A stretch of 64,000 nucleotides of DNA from Polymyxa betae A26-41 (lineage: Eukaryota; Protista; Endomyxa: Phytomyxea). Each line of letters starts with the position of its first letter. Position 1 is the first letter of the stretch. The notes below the pieces were generated by a model. It was not told where the DNA came from, made no database searches, and saw nothing but the letters and a program-made list of their open reading frames with translations. The stretch is taken from NCBI GenBank assembly GCA_003693705.1, contig RBZT01000527.1:1-64000 (forward strand), in the 5' to 3' direction. Shown here piece after piece: positions 2,246 to 43,340 of the stretch. The position numbers were made by a program, and so were the translations under genes.

Positions 2246-3212
2246 GGGCTGGCGGCCTCGTGTACCGAATTGGGGCTATGAGACCGATCATCATTGTCGT
2301 CGTCATACTGTACGTCGGTGGCCGCGCTCCAGTACGTTAGCGACAGGGGTTTCGATGTCCACAGTTGGATCCGTACGTGCCGACAGAGAGCTTGCTGTCG
2401 GGCATCCGTACCCGGATCGATAAAAACGAATGTAATGAAGCTTATAGTGCGGGGAAGTTTCAATGCTGAAAAGTCTTGTAGCAGCCAACTCCGCCAACTG
2501 GTAGTAGTGGGCGCAACCCTGCCAGTGTCGCAGCCTGAACCATCTCGAACGGCGAACCATCGAACGAGGCTAGGGCTGGCGGCTCTGGGTTCGCAAACCC
2601 TCAGTCTATGGCCTCTTGGGCAACTGGTCAAGACTTTGACTCATGCAGATGCGAGATCTCTTTCTGTCCAAATCCGTGAAGGAGCTTTCAAAAAGATCCA
2701 TTGAATAAAGCATTTGAGGGAATGAATCCAAACGTTATCGTCGTGTAGTGAGCCCCGCGACAAATGACAGCTTGATCAATTGGTCGTTCGCATAACGCTT
2801 CATTCGTCAGCATCCTCGCGTGCGCTAGCCGACCATCGCCACCGTTTAAGCTGCGGATCCTGTCTTTCACATGCAGTGTCTGCTTTAACCTATAGTGCTA
2901 CAGTACTGCTACAAAAAGTCACAATTGAATGAATGATCGGCATGAGGCATCTTTATAGAGAAATCAGACTTTTGGCTTGCCGAGACGACAATCTTGCTAC
3001 ACGAAAAAGACCTGGAGTTAGATATCTAAATGCTATAGTGTTCTCAAGAAAGGTAAACATCAACTGTACCGGTGCACCTTGTACCCAACATCCATCTATT
3101 AACGACGGCGTACTGTCGATCATCTGCTGCTAAGGACATCTCCCGCTGATTTCAAATGATCAGAAGTTCGCTCCAGGAGAGTTTCCTCAGATTGGATCCG
3201 AAACGTACCGAT

Positions 3213-3341
3213 CCCGCTTGATCCGTACTGACAGCGAAAGCGCGGTCATTCAACTGCGATTACGCCGATCCGATCCGGAGAACGTGGCGTACTGGCCCCG
3301 CTTGATCCGTACCGAAAGCGAAAGCGCGGTCATTCAACTGC
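3213..3341. repeat. 45-bp direct repeat, two copies (3213-3257, 3297-3341)
   Basis: CCCGCTTGATCCGTAC(T/C)GA(C/A)AGCGAAAGCGCGGTCATTCAACTGC, 2 mismatches between copies. Confidence 0.9.
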
Positions 3342-3343
3342 AG

Positions 3344-3417
3344 TCACGTGATCACCAATTAATTGGTTCACATTGATCATTCTTAATCACGTGATCATCT
3401 AATAAATGGCTCACGTG
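3344..3417. promoter_or_regulatory. Three clustered CACGTG E-box motifs just upstream of the FAAL megaenzyme start
   Basis: CACGTG at 3345, 3388 and 3412, each preceded by T (two as TCACGTGATCA), plus the palindrome ACCAATTAATTGGT between them. Confidence 0.4.
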
Positions 3418-3437
3418 GATCATCCATAATCAGTGAC

Positions 3438-6400
3438 ATGCTCCAGGCAAGCCAAGAACGCGCCAGCAATGGCGACGCCGACCTCGAAGTTTTCGCGTTC
3501 GTCGACCATCGCGGAGCGGTCAGCGAATCGTTAACGAATGCCACCTTGTGGCGACAATCCGGTGCGATGGCCGCAGCACTACTAAAGCAGGTCCATCGCG
3601 GCGACAAAGTACTGATGGTATACACGCCCGGGATCGACTTCGTCGTCGCCTTCCTGGCCTGTTTACGAGCAGAGCTGGTGGCCGTTCCGATTCCGCCTCC
3701 AGACCTGACGCAGAACGGATCCAAAGCCCAGGAAGAATCGCGCAAATTCATCGCGATCGCCAAAGATTCAGGCGCCGTAGCAGTCCTAACCAATAAGGAG
3801 TACAACCAGGCCAAGAACATGAAAGCAGCGATGAAATGGATCCAATCTTGGGTCTGGAGCGACAGCAGCAATGTGACCTGGCCGGACCTGCTCTGGATCG
3901 TGACCAATGATCTTCGTTTCGGCTCAGAGACGCTACCGCCGCAGGACGTTGATCCACCGCTGGATCGTGTCGCCTTCCTGCAATACACATCGGGATCGAC
4001 ATCACAGCCGAAAGGCGTTAGGTCAGTACCTGTCTGCCATCGGAAACCATCGCTGAAACGCCAGCAGGATCACGTTTGGGAACATGAAGCATCAATTAGA
4101 AGCCAACGCCGACATCTTGAACATAAAGAGCACCAGCTGCAATGTCTGTTGGATGCCCCATTTTCACGATTTCGCTTTAATCTCGCATATTGCCAGTATC
4201 TTCTCCGGCAATGGTCGCCTCATCATGTTATCGCCGCTCACATTCCTCGCGAAACCGATCTTATGGTTGGAGCTGGTCGGGCGCTATAGTGCGACCCATC
4301 TTGCCTGTCCTCCATTCGCCCTCTCCATGCTGGTCAGAAAGACGACACCGCAACAGCGCGCAGCTCTTCAGCTGCATTCCATCACGTCGCTGCTTGTGGC
4401 GGCCGATACCATCAAAGGCGCGGCGATCAAAGAGTTCTGTGATGCGTTTTCCGAGTCCGGGTTTCGTCCGAGCATGATTCAGACGGCGTATGGTCTTGCT
4501 GAGCACTGCGTTGGCATCACGATGACAACAGCCCAGAAGCCGGTTACTGAGCTCCCCGTAGACAGCGACATTCTATTCAGCGAACGTCGCATTGAGATCG
4601 TACCATCCAGCCCTTATAGCATCGTATCGTGTGGCGCCCCGATGCCAGGAGTCGCCGTTCGTATCGTCGATCAGGACCAGGTCCAGCCCGAAGGGTACAT
4701 CGGCGAAGTCTGGGCCGACTCCGACAGCAAAGCCGATGGCTACGACGGCCAGCCTGAACTGAGCCGGGCGACGTTCCAGGCCCGCCTCGAGGGCGACACC
4801 GAGCTTGCTTATCTGAGGACCGGCGATCTCGGCTTCCTATGGAAGGGACAGCTATACATCACTGGGCGTCTTAAAGAGATCATCAAACTGTATGGGAGGA
4901 CCCTCCATCCAGTCGATATAGAGCTGTGCGCAACCCAGGCGCACAGCCTCCTCCGTCCTGGCTCTGTCTGTGCCATTGCTGTTTCACATCCTCAAGATGG
5001 CAGTGATCGTCTCGTCATTGTCGCGGAAGTCCAGAAGGGTCGGGAGCCCGACCACGGTACAATCAATGCGATTGTCGATGCTGTTCGCCAGGCAATCCTG
5101 GAGACGTTCTCGGTGTCGTGCCATGCTGTGATTCTGGGTCGTCCTGGGCAGCTGGTGCGAAAAACGACCAGCGGAAAGATTCAAAGGGCGCTGCTGCGAA
5201 CATGGTATCTCGAAGGTCGTCTCGCTCGTCCAACGGAGACGTCGCTGCGGTCGCCAATTTCGAATGCCCTTCTGTACGCTCCATCGCCGCTCGCATCCGG
5301 CCGCCGTCTTCTTCCTCCATCTCCGACCATGGCTGTGCAAATGGGTCAGAAAACAGTATCAAGTCGCTCGTTCTCATTCCAAATGACTGCTCTCGGCCAT
5401 ACTCATGATGATCGCATGCGCCGCCTCTGCGCTGCTGTGCATGATGCCGGCTTCGCCGCCGAAATCCGCCAGCTGGTTGAATTGAATACGGCAGTCAGCT
5501 CACAGCGGAATCAATTGCAGCGGAAGTGTCCATATCAGAAACGCGCTTTCCACGCGGAAGGCGTCGGAGCACGAGGCGATATCCAAATGTCGTTGATTGG
5601 GAATGATCTGTTTTCCCTGGAAGAAAAGCGCGGGCTGAAGGCGGCGGTACGCTTCTCCAATGTTCTCTTTTCCGATGATCGTCATCCACAAATTCGAGGC
5701 GCTGCTTTGAGGATCTACGCGGGAGACGATATCGACAGGCCGTTGATGGATTTCATTTTCCAGAGCGGCGATGGGCGTGACCTCTTTCCTAGCACTCGTC
5801 TGGCGCTGGAAATCTTTAAAGACAACGAATATGTGATGGGGCTGCCGCCATCCCACCCCCTGCGAGACGCTCATCGGTCTGCTATCCGTCAGGTCCCGGG
5901 TTCGTACGCCGACCTGCATTATTTCGGCGTGCATACGTATTCGTGGCATTCAACGCACTGGGCCCGGTTCCGATTCCGTCATCGAGATTGTCATGAAACC
6001 CTTCCTCCTTATTCGAACGATCAGAACTGTGATCTCCTTGATCTGCGGCCTGCACCCGAAGACAATCGCGCTCACGATTTTCTGCGAACATCTTTCTTGA
6101 ACGAAAGCCTTTCGGGCGGCGGCGAACGTTACGTGGTTGAAGTACAGATTCGTCCGAAATCCAAAGACGACGCTGTCGATTTCAAGATGCAAGACGGCCT
6201 GGTCTTATGGGATGACACGCCGTGGCAGCTGTTTGCTGAGGTCGCTCTCGACGATCCGCTTCCCGATGATGTTACGGAAAGCCTCAGATTCAACATTTGC
6301 AATTCTCCCATCGATATTGAGATTGTTGCTGGTTCCGATGCTGATCATCCGGCGTCGTCTGGCCAATGCCGGGCCATCACCTACGCCATTGCATCCAGCA

Positions 6401-8924
6401 TTCGCCGCGGCGTCGCACTCCCCGACTATCTAGCTAGTTTTGTTCAAATGAAGCCCTCTCCTGCCATGTTGCTCACAACTGGGTCCGATATGGCATCTGC
6501 GCAGTGCTCATCGGTGGTCGTTATTGGTGCGGGCTCCTCCGGTTTGGCAGTGGCAATGGCTCTGGAACGTCGTGGGTATCAGGTGACCGTGCTGGAGGCG
6601 GCTGCCAACGTCGGCGGCAAAGCATCGTCCATCTATTACGACCAGAAAGTGTTCGACTGGGGTGGACATCTCTGCAATAATTCGTATTATAACGTTCGTG
6701 CTCTTGTTAATCGTTTCGAATTGGAAATCGAGCCCGCTGCTCCTCCCCATTTGTTTAACTGCAAGGAGCGCCGATCGACGATCTGCAACATTTTCCAAAA
6801 TGGTGACGAGACTGATTTTTTCCAGCGCGCCATTCGTTCCATGACCGAAGATTTCGGTGTTCGCGATCGCGTCTCGACGCCGCTGTCTATATGGGCCGGT
6901 GCAATGAAAGTTCCTTGGCGTAAATGGATCGAAGCGGATTCTGCACGGAAGAAGCAGCTTTGGCCGGTCATCTTGCAAATGAATAGCTGTGGTTACGGGT
7001 TCTCCCTCGACCATCAGATTCCTCTGGCGTTTCTCGCCAAACTCGTCGCTGTCTCTGACGAGTTCCGTTCGGTGGGATGGACGTTGAAGGCTGGCATGCA
7101 ATCGCTCTATGACGCTATGGCTGACAACCTGAACGACATTCGCCTCAATTCTCCTGTCGCCGGGATCGAGCGGCGTGATGGTTCTGTCCAGGTTCGTCTC
7201 TCCAGTGGCGAGGTTTTTGCTGCCGATTACGTTGTGTCTTCGCTGTCACTACCACACACGATCGCTTTGCTTGACTCTCCTTCAGAGACAGAGCTTTCTG
7301 TTGCCGGTGCCGTCCGTACGTTCTGCTATTATACAACGATCGCTAGGTGTCGTGGCTTAGAGCAATTCGCCATTGGATTCCACGTTATGGACGTATTTAA
7401 CGAACCCGACCAAGCTGCAGGCAGCATCGGCCATGTCGTAGCTTGGCACAAACGCTACACCGATTGCAACATTTACCTGTTCTATTCGTTTGCACCCGAT
7501 CTGCAATCCGGCGATGCTGTACAGCGCTTGCTGCAGAAAGATGTTAAAGAGATACTGGATGGCGATGTCATCGAGATCTTGAACCAGCGTGCTTTCGATT
7601 TCTTCCCGTACGCAACTGAACCGGATCATTTCTATCCCAAATTGGCTGAAATTCAGGGTCATGAACGTCTCTGGCATGTTGGCAGCATTTGCAATATCGA
7701 GTCAGTGATATATGTGGTTTTTTCGTTTAAATTTTGGCCTCATTTTCTTAAGTGCTCTGTTGAATATTCTTTGTTGGTAAAAGGTTTTCCATTGTCGAGG
7801 TTCTTGTCTCCGCTCTGTACCATTTTGTTTGTTGCTTTCACTAATCTTGTCGTTTTAGATTGATGGAAGGAAATTTGAGTTTTGGTCAGCGTCTAGTTCG
7901 AGAAAACTTCCCACCTGTTGAACCCAGTTGCTTTCTATCGCCTTCTCCCAGCTCCATGCCCGTTATGCACCGAGAGTTAACTACTACTGAACGCTTTATC
8001 GTCGATTCGATTTTTGCCGAATGCCCAGAGATCGATATCGGCCCGGGAGCGGTTGCCCCAACAGATAAAATCGCCTCTCTTGGAATCACGTCAATTTCTC
8101 TACCGGCTCTGGCCAACACCTTCAGCAAATATACCGGCACCCGAGTTCGTCTCATCGACTGCGCGATTTATCCGACGGTTCAAGCGCTGGGCGCCTTCCT
8201 GGACCGAGTTCGCGATCAGACCCAGCTTCAGACATTCCAATTCATCAAGCATATACGCTCAATCAGCGAAGAAGGTGGCGAAGGCTCCAACTCGATCCTG
8301 TTCATGGTCCACGATGGGCTGGGTCGTACTCATCAATATGTTAACAGCTCTCATTATCCGCTGTCCTTGATCCAGCCGTATTGGGAAGCCCACAACGCCA
8401 CTCTCCTGACGTCACTGGACGAAGTCGCCGCCTTATATGTCGGACAGATCCGGGCTGCACGGCCCCAAGGGCCTTGGCGCTTGGGCGGGTATTCCCTGGG
8501 CGCCATGCTGGCCTGGCGCATGGCCCAGATGCTCGGTGTCGTGGATCGGTTAATATTGATCGACTGCCCGTGCATCCCGCCCTTATTGCATGAAGCTGTT
8601 GCTGATGCCAACGTCATCCGGCTGCTTCAGTCACAGTTCTCGGATATGGAACATTTCGAGTACAGTCGCGCGCTAACTGATCAGATTCCCAAGAATCCGG
8701 TGCTGCCTGGACAGCGATCAGGACCGACCTTGGTGATTGTTGGCTCCAAAGGTGTCGTCCAGGATATGAAACTGGCTAATACTGATGAGTTGAAGCAAAG
8801 CTGGGGGCGGGCCATTGGCTCTGAGCTTAGCTTTGTCAACATCGAGGGAGCCAATCACACCAACATTATGTTGGCACCGTATGCCGATCAAGTACATTCT
8901 GCAATCGAGCAATTCTTGCATTGA
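3438..8924 (+). CDS. Multidomain FAAL - catalase-like heme (AOS/HPL-type) - FAD oxidoreductase - ACP - thioesterase, ~1760 aa; exons 3438-4021, 4068-7700, 7859-8924
   Basis: FAAL: AFLQYTSGSTSQPKGV, WMPHFHDFALI, AYGLAE plus insertion, YLRTGDLGF, ITGRLKEII, KTTSGKIQR. Catalase-like: KRAFHAEG, VRFSN, IRGAALRI, RAITY. FAD domain: VVVIGAGSSGL...VLEAAANVGGK...FDWGGH. ACP: LGITSI. TE: VHDGLG, GPWRLGGYSLG, LILID, GANH. Introns 4022-4067 and 7701-7858 (both GTCAGT...AG) join the three ORFs in frame: 5283 nt = 1761 codons. Confidence 0.9.
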
Positions 8925-41622: not shown

Positions 41623-42282
41623 TTAATAATGGGCGTTGTCCCAGCCGTAAGTTTTTTGAGACATTTCGCTGGTCACGTCGGTCTCAGGTGATGAGCTGTT
41701 GGACGCTTTTTGGCTTTCGTAGACTTGCTCCCATCCGGTTAGACGGGGTATTGACCAAGTTAGCAGCTGTGTTAACAAGCTGAACTCGCCGACCGACAAA
41801 GTCACCTCCAGAACCTTCTTATTATTCAAAGGATCTAACTTCTCGAGCTGGATCGTGCAGCGCCCATCGGGCGACGGAAAGAATCGGAGCTCGCGTGGCG
41901 GTTTTTCAACTTCGTCCAGCGTATTGGTGGCTGCTGGGCGTTCCGATCGTGTGATGCAGAAGGGCTTGTTCATTGAGATCACTGTAGCGACTTCAACGGG
42001 GACCAAAGCTATCCGCTCTTTGACATTCCAATCAAACTTGCCGCTTGAATCACGAGCGACAAACTGGAACAAAATGGTGCCTGGATATTGTAAATTCAAA
42101 TAGGTCGGGCGACGCTGGAATTTCGGAGCCGAAAGGCTGACACTCATGCAGACCGACGGCGAGTAGAACGACGTCGAAGCAAACGTTCGCGAAATCGACT
42201 GAGAGGCATCCGACAGGAATCTAATCGACCTCAGACCCGAACCCATCCATACGAAGCGCTGCGAGAGCATCTTGAAAGACAT
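41623..42282 (-). CDS. Whirly-domain single-stranded nucleic-acid-binding protein, probably mitochondrial
   Basis: Arg/Ser-rich presequence MLSQRFVWMGSGLRSIRFLS; SLSAPKF...GTILFQF...FDWNVKERIALVPVEV and LSVGEFSLLTQLLTWSIPRLTGW match the Whirly pattern. Confidence 0.8.
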   Translation of the reverse strand: MSFKMLSQRFVWMGSGLRSIRFLSDASQSISRTFASTSFYSPSVCMSVSLSAPKFQRRPTYLNLQYPGTILFQFVARDSSGKFDWNVKERIALVPVEVATVISMNKPFCITRSERPAATNTLDEVEKPPRELRFFPSPDGRCTIQLEKLDPLNNKKVLEVTLSVGEFSLLTQLLTWSIPRLTGWEQVYESQKASNSSSPETDVTSEMSQKTYGWDNAHY

Positions 42283-43340
42283 CTCAACGACGAAGATGCA
42301 GACGGGGTAGTTCTGGTCGGTTCCTCCGGTGCGCAACACGCAGTCGATTGCGCCATGAGAATGAGCCATGAGGTGGTCCCATTCATCACAATCAGAACCC
42401 GACAAACTGAAAGCTTGCTTTCGATGAGATCCATTAATCTTAAACCAACAAAACTACGAACGGGGTTGATGCATCCTGCCGGATTCTGCGGCGGCGGTTC
42501 TTATCGTCATTAGCATTCGTCACGAAAGGACTTCTGCTAACCTGACTTTTGTTGTTGGAGAAGTTTCGCCATCAAACATCCTCATATGAGGATAGACGAA
42601 CTTAAGCTGATGACTATTTTAACATAACTGGAAAAAGCAGTTTTAACCATGAGTAATTCGCAGTTTGTCTGCTCTCAATAGCTCTCGTCATCGATACCAT
42701 ATGAGAGCTTTTCCATGGTGTAACCTGTATAATCACCGAATTTCAAGCATTCGTGTGATCTAAACAACTGACATTGCCTTGCTACACATCAACGCAGAAG
42801 ATCAGGATCTAGTCATAATATAATGGTCTTCAGAATGACTTTCACAAAATTGTCTTTCATTTTACTGACTGAACTTACATGAAGCGGATGAATTCGTTCG
42901 CAAGGTGTCTATTACAGTCCAATTGCAGTATGGTTTGATCGGTCATGCCTGTTAGTGGCTATGCTGCACATGAGAAGCGTGGAACGAGGCTTGAGAAGCG
43001 TGGAACGAGGCTGGCGAAGCCCGTCTCGAATAGTTCGGGGTCTGGGTAGTCAACGATCCACAATCAGGTGCCCTCCGAGCCGAGTGTATTCCGGTATTAC
43101 TCAGGCCACCTCAAGTCTAGCTTACAGTCGGCGGCCTGGCCCTTCCTGTCATTGTGTGACGGCTGACGCTATACCGGGCCCGTTTCATCACCCCAGCAAC
43201 CCTTGTCGTTTGATATAGCTGGCTTAGGCCATTGACGTCAAGGCCGACTGCGTGGAAGCGTCTCTTGAGCTCGCCATTATTTGTACTTATCATATGACAT
43301 AATAGCGCTGGTGCTCGACGACGCCAAGTGTCCCGAGAGT

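Follow-up and report, generated by a model that had tools for sequence, protein, structure and literature searches.

Three exons at positions 3438-8924 (+) of contig RBZT01000527.1 of Polymyxa betae A26-41 form one gene, confirmed at the level of the sequence, for a 1760-amino-acid (aa) protein with five domains: a fatty acyl-AMP ligase (FAAL), a catalase-fold heme domain, a flavoenzyme, an acyl carrier protein (ACP) and a thioesterase (TE). The window, i.e. the whole stretch of DNA analyzed, comprises the first 64,000 nucleotides (nt) of this contig. The plant 'HemY-FAAL-catalase' protein (Patil et al. 2021, PMC8460268), whose function is reported there as unknown, has homologous FAD, FAAL, ACP and catalase-fold domains (P0033, Selaginella; P0037, Eucalyptus cluster; also Populus); a preliminary description of the locus had rightly pointed to such a giant plant protein. 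The land-plant protein differs in its permuted order (FAD-FAAL-ACP-...-heme), its hexapeptide repeats, the absence of a TE match, and a Lys at the position of Asn137 of coral allene oxide synthase (cAOS); in the Polymyxa protein the parts are reordered and a TE is added.

The coral fusion of cAOS with lipoxygenase (LOX) (1u5u/3dy5) and cHPL share with the Polymyxa protein a heme domain with R64, H67, R102, Y353 and R360, followed by an enzyme expected to attack a bis-allylic carbon. They differ in that the partner is a LOX and not a flavoenzyme, and T66, K107 and N137 are changed in Polymyxa, which adds FAAL, ACP and TE and for which an ACP-bound substrate is predicted. As far as we know, the characterized catalase-related oxylipin enzymes take as substrates free hydroperoxides supplied by a LOX or dioxygenase. 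Ketosynthase (KS)-free FAAL/ACP/TE clusters (polyyne cay-type, JamABC, CDA HxcO) load a fatty acid on ACP, modify it, and release it or pass it on; their modifying enzymes are di-iron desaturases or flavins of the acyl-CoA-dehydrogenase type, each a protein of its own, whereas in Polymyxa domains resembling cAOS and the polyunsaturated fatty acid isomerase PAI share one chain.

For the flavoenzyme, PAI of Propionibacterium acnes (2b9w) has the same full-length fold, is the best profile and structure match, and shares the GYG and YFPH-type motifs; it differs by only 18% identity in the structural alignment, by its R88 and F168, which are not kept, and as a stand-alone enzyme that accepts free acids only (PMC5442254). 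In Sorangium, the maracen cluster (PMC12800573, Table S7) places a polyunsaturated-fatty-acid (PUFA) synthase beside flavin amine-oxidoreductase genes and yields an oxygenated PUFA derivative; it has a LOX and a P450, and the available part of the table lists no FAAL, catalase-like or TE gene. As far as that part of the table goes, its design is different, and the cluster was rejected as a characterized example.

Every part of the Polymyxa protein is known already, and the plant permutation has been flagged before; the widespread system is real but uncharacterized. Its relatives span bacteria, fungi, algae and land plants, and for none of them could a function be found. The architecture search that the preliminary description had called for, across bacteria and eukaryotes, returned the same order, and a literature search, with most subscription journals out of reach, returned no paper characterizing the FAAL-heme-FAD-ACP-TE order or its products. 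By analogy, the Polymyxa line may be viewed as KS-free FAAL/ACP/TE tailoring crossed with a cAOS-LOX fusion.

Gene structure and domains

The following features were predicted at the locus (positions are those of the window).

3438..4021 (+): exon 1, N-terminal part of the FAAL, comprising the proline-rich VPIPPP loop and the P-loop as far as PKGVR (Pfam AMP-binding, NCBIfam FAAL models)
4022..4067 (+): intron 1, 46 nt, GTCAGT..CAG, phase 2, at the same codon position in the paralog
4068..5226 (+): remainder of the FAAL, with W (4150) and F (4171) at the positions of W224 and M231 of EcFAAL, FAAL-specific helix and insertion (features as in PMC8460268), and A10 Lys (5176)
5400..6440 (+): cAOS-like heme domain; kept R64 (5542), H67 (5551), R102 (5650), R349 (6370), Y353 (6382), R360 (6403); changed T66 to F (5548), K107 to L (5665), N137 to Q (5761)
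6499..7700 (+): PAI-like FAD domain, with GxGxxG and conserved GGH motif; Cys (6988) at the PAI F168 position, no Arg at the R88 position
7701..7858 (+): intron 2, 158 nt, GTCAGT..TAG, phase 2, 35% GC, from splice signals and paralog comparison
7859..7910 (+): C-terminal helix of the FAD domain, on exon 3, aligned with intronless homologues
7983..8219 (+): ACP, with phosphopantetheine Ser (8091) in a G-I-T-S motif (PP-binding, alignment, predicted fold)
8295..8924 (+): type-I-like TE, with Ser (8493, GYSLG), Asp (8562) and His (8856); stop 8922-8924 (Pfam, alignment)
3204..3429 (+): upstream direct repeats, 61 nt twice (3204, 3288) and 43 nt twice (3344, 3387); none upstream of the paralog

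The exons (3438-4021, 4068-7700, 7859-8924; 584 + 3633 + 1066 = 5283 nt, i.e. 1760 codons plus stop) are free of internal stops in frame, and both introns run from GT to AG, the second with a branch-like CTAAT at 7841; the preliminary description had joined three open reading frames (ORFs) across the same introns, and this model held. A paralog (G000:C536:14201-19577) aligns with each of the three exons (72, 68 and 58% identity; about 68% overall) and carries phase-2 introns at the same two codons, of 49 and 132 nt and different in sequence. The first 17 residues of exon 3 align with the last, C-terminal helix of the flavoenzyme in intronless bacterial homologues, i.e. the second junction completes this domain, as had been proposed. 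A relative on a JGI contig (L025; 56% identical) reads through this junction with no intron, and its ACP and TE follow; a single-base break in the frame lies near the start of the ACP. Together, the intron positions of the paralog, the intronless relative and the helix match support the splice junctions beyond chance. Searches, alignments and folds were made exon by exon, each exon separately.

Both Polymyxa copies are intact, and all five domains are under purifying selection, with ratios of nonsynonymous to synonymous substitution (dN/dS) between the copies of 0.18-0.19 (FAAL), 0.125 (heme), 0.08 (FAD), 0.10 (ACP) and 0.20 (TE); these figures are rough, since dS is 1.0-2.6, near saturation. 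KMS94374.1 (BVRB_022050, P0001), a protein assigned to Beta vulgaris by its annotation, has essentially the sequence of the C536 paralog, and its 944-bp contig is therefore probably a Polymyxa contamination of the sugar-beet assembly. In a FastTree phylogeny both Polymyxa proteins stand on a long branch without a supported sister, and hence no donor or transfer is claimed.

The FAAL hallmarks are a blocked CoA pocket (W224, M231, F279), a FAAL-specific helix and insertion, and a proline-lined alternative pocket (PMC8460268). The Polymyxa domain has W, F and F at the three pocket positions, placed by motif rather than by direct 3PBK alignment, the helix motif LTFLAKP, the insertion, through which it aligns with 7r7f (E 1e-53), and VPIPPP in exon 1. 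Pfam AMP-binding was matched by exon 1 (E 9e-23) and exon 2 (E 6e-20), with the best NCBIfam matches among FAALs; exon 2 matched FAAL models at E about 1e-57 to 1e-63, compared with 1e-22 for a CoA ligase and 3e-19 for adenylation (A) domains, and the curated whole-protein FAAL cut-offs were not reached in the exon-wise search. The N-terminal domain of exons 1-2 is accordingly assigned, on these features, as a FAAL rather than a CoA ligase or an A domain of a nonribosomal peptide synthetase, and ACP loading is its predicted activity.

The heme domain matched PDB 1u5u in the single-exon search (E 7e-15), and the family profile matched cAOS at E 7e-63 (next structure, 2e-17). It has the catalase fold with heme-binding Arg64, Arg102 and Arg360, proximal Tyr353 and distal His67, and both Polymyxa copies and most relatives retain all these ligands and the distal His. 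The distal Thr66 and Asn137 of cAOS are replaced by Phe and Gln, and by Phe and Leu in the paralog; Lys107 is absent in all 36 aligned rows. In cAOS, Lys107 is the likely carboxylate anchor and Asn137 is non-essential (PMC5617202). No LOX or dioxygenase partner of the cAOS type is fused or lies within the window, and a LOX-like gene is found on another contig. On its residues the domain is not filed as an allene oxide synthase. Catalase-fold domains without the R-x-x-H distal segment occur in P0044, P0070, P0196-P0201, P0017/P0155 and as the second domain of P0003, in which an intact and a distal-segment-less domain stand in tandem; the proximal R-x-x-x-Y is retained in those of these subfamilies that were aligned.

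The flavoenzyme matched Pfam Amino_oxidase (E 2e-24), and its profile matched PAI 2b9w end to end (E 1e-84; next, 5e-28), with the full-length PAI fold and the FAD-binding motif present. In an AlphaFold model of heme plus FAD domains (pLDDT 85.5), PAI was the top Foldseek match (TM 0.79, by target), and cAOS scored TM 0.74. Arg88 and Phe168, which we take to be active-site residues of PAI, are not conserved: no conserved Arg was found, and position 168 is a small residue throughout the aligned family (Cys, Ser, Ala or Thr), with an invariant His beside the flavin. Residue by residue, the domain would thus fall outside PAI proper.

The ACP matched PP-binding at E 0.003, below the Pfam cut-off; a four-helix ACP bundle is predicted (local pLDDT about 82-94), with the Ser at the start of helix II. 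The residue before this Ser is not the Asp or His of the G-x-D-S motif but Thr, as also in the paralog and in Streptomyces P0028, and Ser in L025; the domain is a predicted carrier with putative phosphopantetheinylation, and genes of the phosphopantetheinyl transferase (PPTase) family are present in the Polymyxa genome. The TE (E 2e-13 in the single-exon Pfam search) has GxSxG, Asp and His after the ACP, as in type I enzymes. The ACP Ser (8091) and TE Ser (8493) lie where the preliminary description had put them and are invariant in 18 aligned relatives. Its wider claim of key residues in every domain stands for the heme ligands, distal His, ACP Ser and TE triad, and fell short for Thr66 (Phe), Asn137 (Gln) and the ACP motif (G-I-T-S).

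Upstream of the gene, the second 43-nt repeat copy contains an out-of-frame ATG (3406) in strong context that opens a 7-codon upstream ORF, and the start codon of the paralog lies 9 codons upstream of the position matching ATG 3438; the repeats and upstream ORF could dampen translation or conceal an assembly indel. An upstream TCACGTGATCA motif was not more frequent than expected by chance. The neighbors on the contig are eukaryotic (UBR-box ligase, kinase, Whirly, tyrosine phosphatase); the Whirly-family single-stranded-DNA-binding domain (PF08536, E 2e-10), here in a rhizarian, is encoded at 41623-42405 (-) of the window. There is no sign that the five-domain enzyme is a toxin or secreted effector.

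Distribution of the family and genomic context

The domain order is not peculiar to the Polymyxa genome: it recurs in bacteria (myxobacteria and cyanobacteria), in a chytrid and in further protists. A HMMER scan of 1.84 billion representatives with the heme+FAD region as query retrieved many fusions, at about 27-33% identity; a word-index search with this region gave no match, in a pattern scan of genome contigs the only matches, in Aquiflexum, were at the level of ACP/TE, and a metagenome scan gave none. A 1726-aa protein of Polyangiaceae (MCU0655709.1) has exactly FAAL-heme-FAD-ACP-TE; Coleofasciculus/Trichocoleus proteins have this order plus an insert of roughly 270 aa, and those of Archangium and the chytrid Spizellomyces punctatus (SPPG_08952) extend it at the C-terminus. 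In Gefionella okellyi the order is the same for the first four domains, and Flectonema neradi and Myrmecia bisecta have FAAL-heme-FAD; in Streptomyces and Lentzea the system is split in two, with the FAAL as a separate upstream gene. No Plasmodiophora or Spongospora orthologue was recognizable among the matches listed, which does not establish absence. The family is sparse, with 4 of 301 genomes sampled in the class of the Archangium genome and 2 of 401 in the family of the Streptomyces genome.

The common core is FAAL, PAI-like domain and ACP. The release end is a TE in some members and a lysophospholipid acyltransferase, thioester reductase or condensation domain in others, and its exchangeability points to an acyl-ACP as the product. 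In Glomeromycota, FAD, FAAL, ACP and TE occur without the heme domain; proteins of about 1620-1950 aa with PAI-like FAD-FAAL-ACP-TE and no heme domain comprise Rhizophagus irregularis P0217, as well as P0066, P0207, P0211-P0213, P0216, P0223 and P0248. Proteins of this kind are widespread in arbuscular mycorrhizal fungi, which is notable since the fungi rely on fatty acids of their hosts.

About 15 of the retrieved proteins have, in addition, a class II terpene-cyclase-like domain. This extra domain of about 520 aa, without a Pfam match (P0010:1745-2280; also P0004, P0005, P0011, P0016, P0018, P0022, P0034), is matched by profile to class II terpene cyclases (6vpt, E 2e-18), with an Asp-x-Asp motif retained, which suggests cyclization of a fatty-acyl epoxide or polyene. 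A conserved insert of about 260 aa, also without a Pfam match, lies between heme and FAD domains in P0019 (940-1215), P0008, P0014, P0024, P0031 and P0038, and members of this subfamily have a heme domain closer to cAOS, with Thr or Ala preceding the His.

At three of the four actinobacterial loci, pfa-type PUFA-synthase genes lie alongside, frequently together with a P450 and in one case with a PPTase; no LOX or dioxygenase was present among the called or inspected genes at the bacterial loci read. Directly upstream of a cyanobacterial homologue (L010, 8576-9995), fragmented KS ORFs without a match to the pfaBC query are possibly a decayed gene for a PUFA or polyketide synthase. LOX (PF00305) was found in three of the six bacterial genomes tested (G002, G101, G232) and not in G003 or G296, and neither PF00305 nor PF03098 was found in Streptomyces G001 (completeness of these last three genomes is not given).

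The Polymyxa genome itself contains a LOX-like gene that is rich in introns and has His motifs for iron ligands (G000:C19:41241-41988; L015-L017) and a gene of the heme-peroxidase/dioxygenase family (G000:C437:5645-7156; PF03098, E 8e-90), and the protist may thus have a wider oxylipin toolkit. A long open frame at G000:C591:37053-40367 (L018) encodes the C-terminus of a fungal-type fatty acid synthase (KS plus fused PPTase).

Proposed route and its alternatives

The general reading of the preliminary description, i.e. a line that loads, modifies and releases a fatty acid, is very probably correct: it draws on the FAAL features, on cAOS and PAI as nearest folds, and on the PUFA-synthase neighbors in actinobacteria, while activity of the heme domain is not assured. 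The specific route, with a PUFA-ACP isomerized or oxidized by the flavin, oxygenated at the heme and released by the TE, we hold to be about evenly balanced between right and wrong. One cytosolic enzyme of 1760 aa would tailor a tethered PUFA: the FAAL, with domain and residues in place, would adenylate a C18-C20 PUFA, possibly host-derived, and load the ACP Ser; the flavin, given its fold, would take a bis-allylic hydrogen as PAI does, to give a conjugated acyl chain, and in air the reduced flavin or a pentadienyl intermediate would also give a peroxide (H2O2 or a fatty-acyl hydroperoxide). The cAOS-like heme, its ligands present, might then use this peroxide to form an epoxide, an allene oxide/ketol or a cleavage product, which is the weakest step, and the TE, with its triad, would free the acid or close a lactone. 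The product would be an oxylipin-like lipid; its role for the parasite, in zoospore or host signaling or as a spore lipid, can only be guessed at. Loss of both carboxylate anchors (cAOS Lys107, PAI Arg88) is expected for a thioester-bound substrate. That the flavin replaces LOX outright, i.e. removes the bis-allylic hydrogen, delivers O2 to the ACP-bound PUFA and passes the hydroperoxide to the adjacent heme in the same chain, is a doubtful extension.

Several observations weigh against this route. Thr66 is Phe in both Polymyxa copies, unlike in cAOS; the heme domain is dispensable across the family (22 FAAL-PAI and 37 PAI-FAAL among the retrieved long proteins), and the distal His is lost in the exact five-domain homologues P0017/P0155 and P0196. 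These substitutions, absences and losses leave the activity of the predicted heme enzyme unassured. We know of no flavin of the PAI-like family that makes a fatty-acid hydroperoxide; the C19 LOX-like and C437 genes could supply hydroperoxides instead, and no PUFA synthase was detected in G001 with the query used.

The flavin may do all the chemistry, yielding a conjugated or desaturated acyl-ACP for release by the TE, with a catalase-fold domain that removes H2O2 or is structural. The make-up of the family core, the many members without heme domain or distal His, and the substituted T66 and N137 agree with this; however, heme ligands and distal His are under purifying selection in both Polymyxa copies, the domain is far nearer to cAOS than to catalases, and the cAOS of P. 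homomalla is described as unable to scavenge H2O2, that of C. imbricata doing so to some extent (PMC5617202), and we consider this reading unlikely. A classic oxylipin route, in which a hydroperoxide from a separate LOX or dioxygenase of protist or host is loaded by the FAAL and converted by the heme before the flavin acts, seems more unlikely still: characterized cAOS and cHPL enzymes use LOX products (PMC5617202), and candidate genes exist in the Polymyxa genome and LOX in half of the bacterial genomes tested, but no LOX lies beside any locus read, and no LOX was found in G001, G003 or G296, nor PF03098 in G001 (completeness of these genomes not given).

A saturated or monounsaturated substrate, or a ring as end product (furan or carbocyclic fatty acid), with desaturation by the flavin and oxygenation by the heme, would fit the apparent lack of a PUFA synthase in G001, the small residue at the PAI Phe168 position with its invariant His by the flavin, and the terpene-cyclase-like domain or P450 of many relatives; we regard it as improbable in view of the pfa genes alongside at three loci, of PAI as by far the nearest structure, and of the Polymyxa proteins, which have no cyclase or methyltransferase domain. 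An artifact (separate genes, a pseudogene, or a bacterial contig in an assembly binned from a root metagenome, PMC6328671) is hardly credible for a gene that, though intron-poor and GC-rich (54% vs 45% for the genome), shares spliceosomal introns with its paralog, has eukaryotic neighbors, recurs as a near-identical paralog piece in an independent sugar-beet assembly (KMS94374.1), and has single-ORF homologues in bacteria and protist transcriptomes.

Implications

The presence of both folds within a FAAL-ACP-TE line predicts new chemistry on tethered PUFAs. The 'HemY' and 'catalase' domains of the plant protein can be assigned to PAI- and cAOS-like lineages, and the intronless bacterial versions beside PUFA synthases make the plant protein testable via small operons. 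For the parasite, the locus points to a route to a lipid metabolite, which this obligate root biotroph, a vector of a beet virus, has retained in two copies. If the flavin does replace LOX, oxylipins would be made on a carrier protein by a self-contained pathway that needs no LOX, present in bacteria, protists, a chytrid and, in permuted form, land plants, and a conserved plant protein would gain a function.

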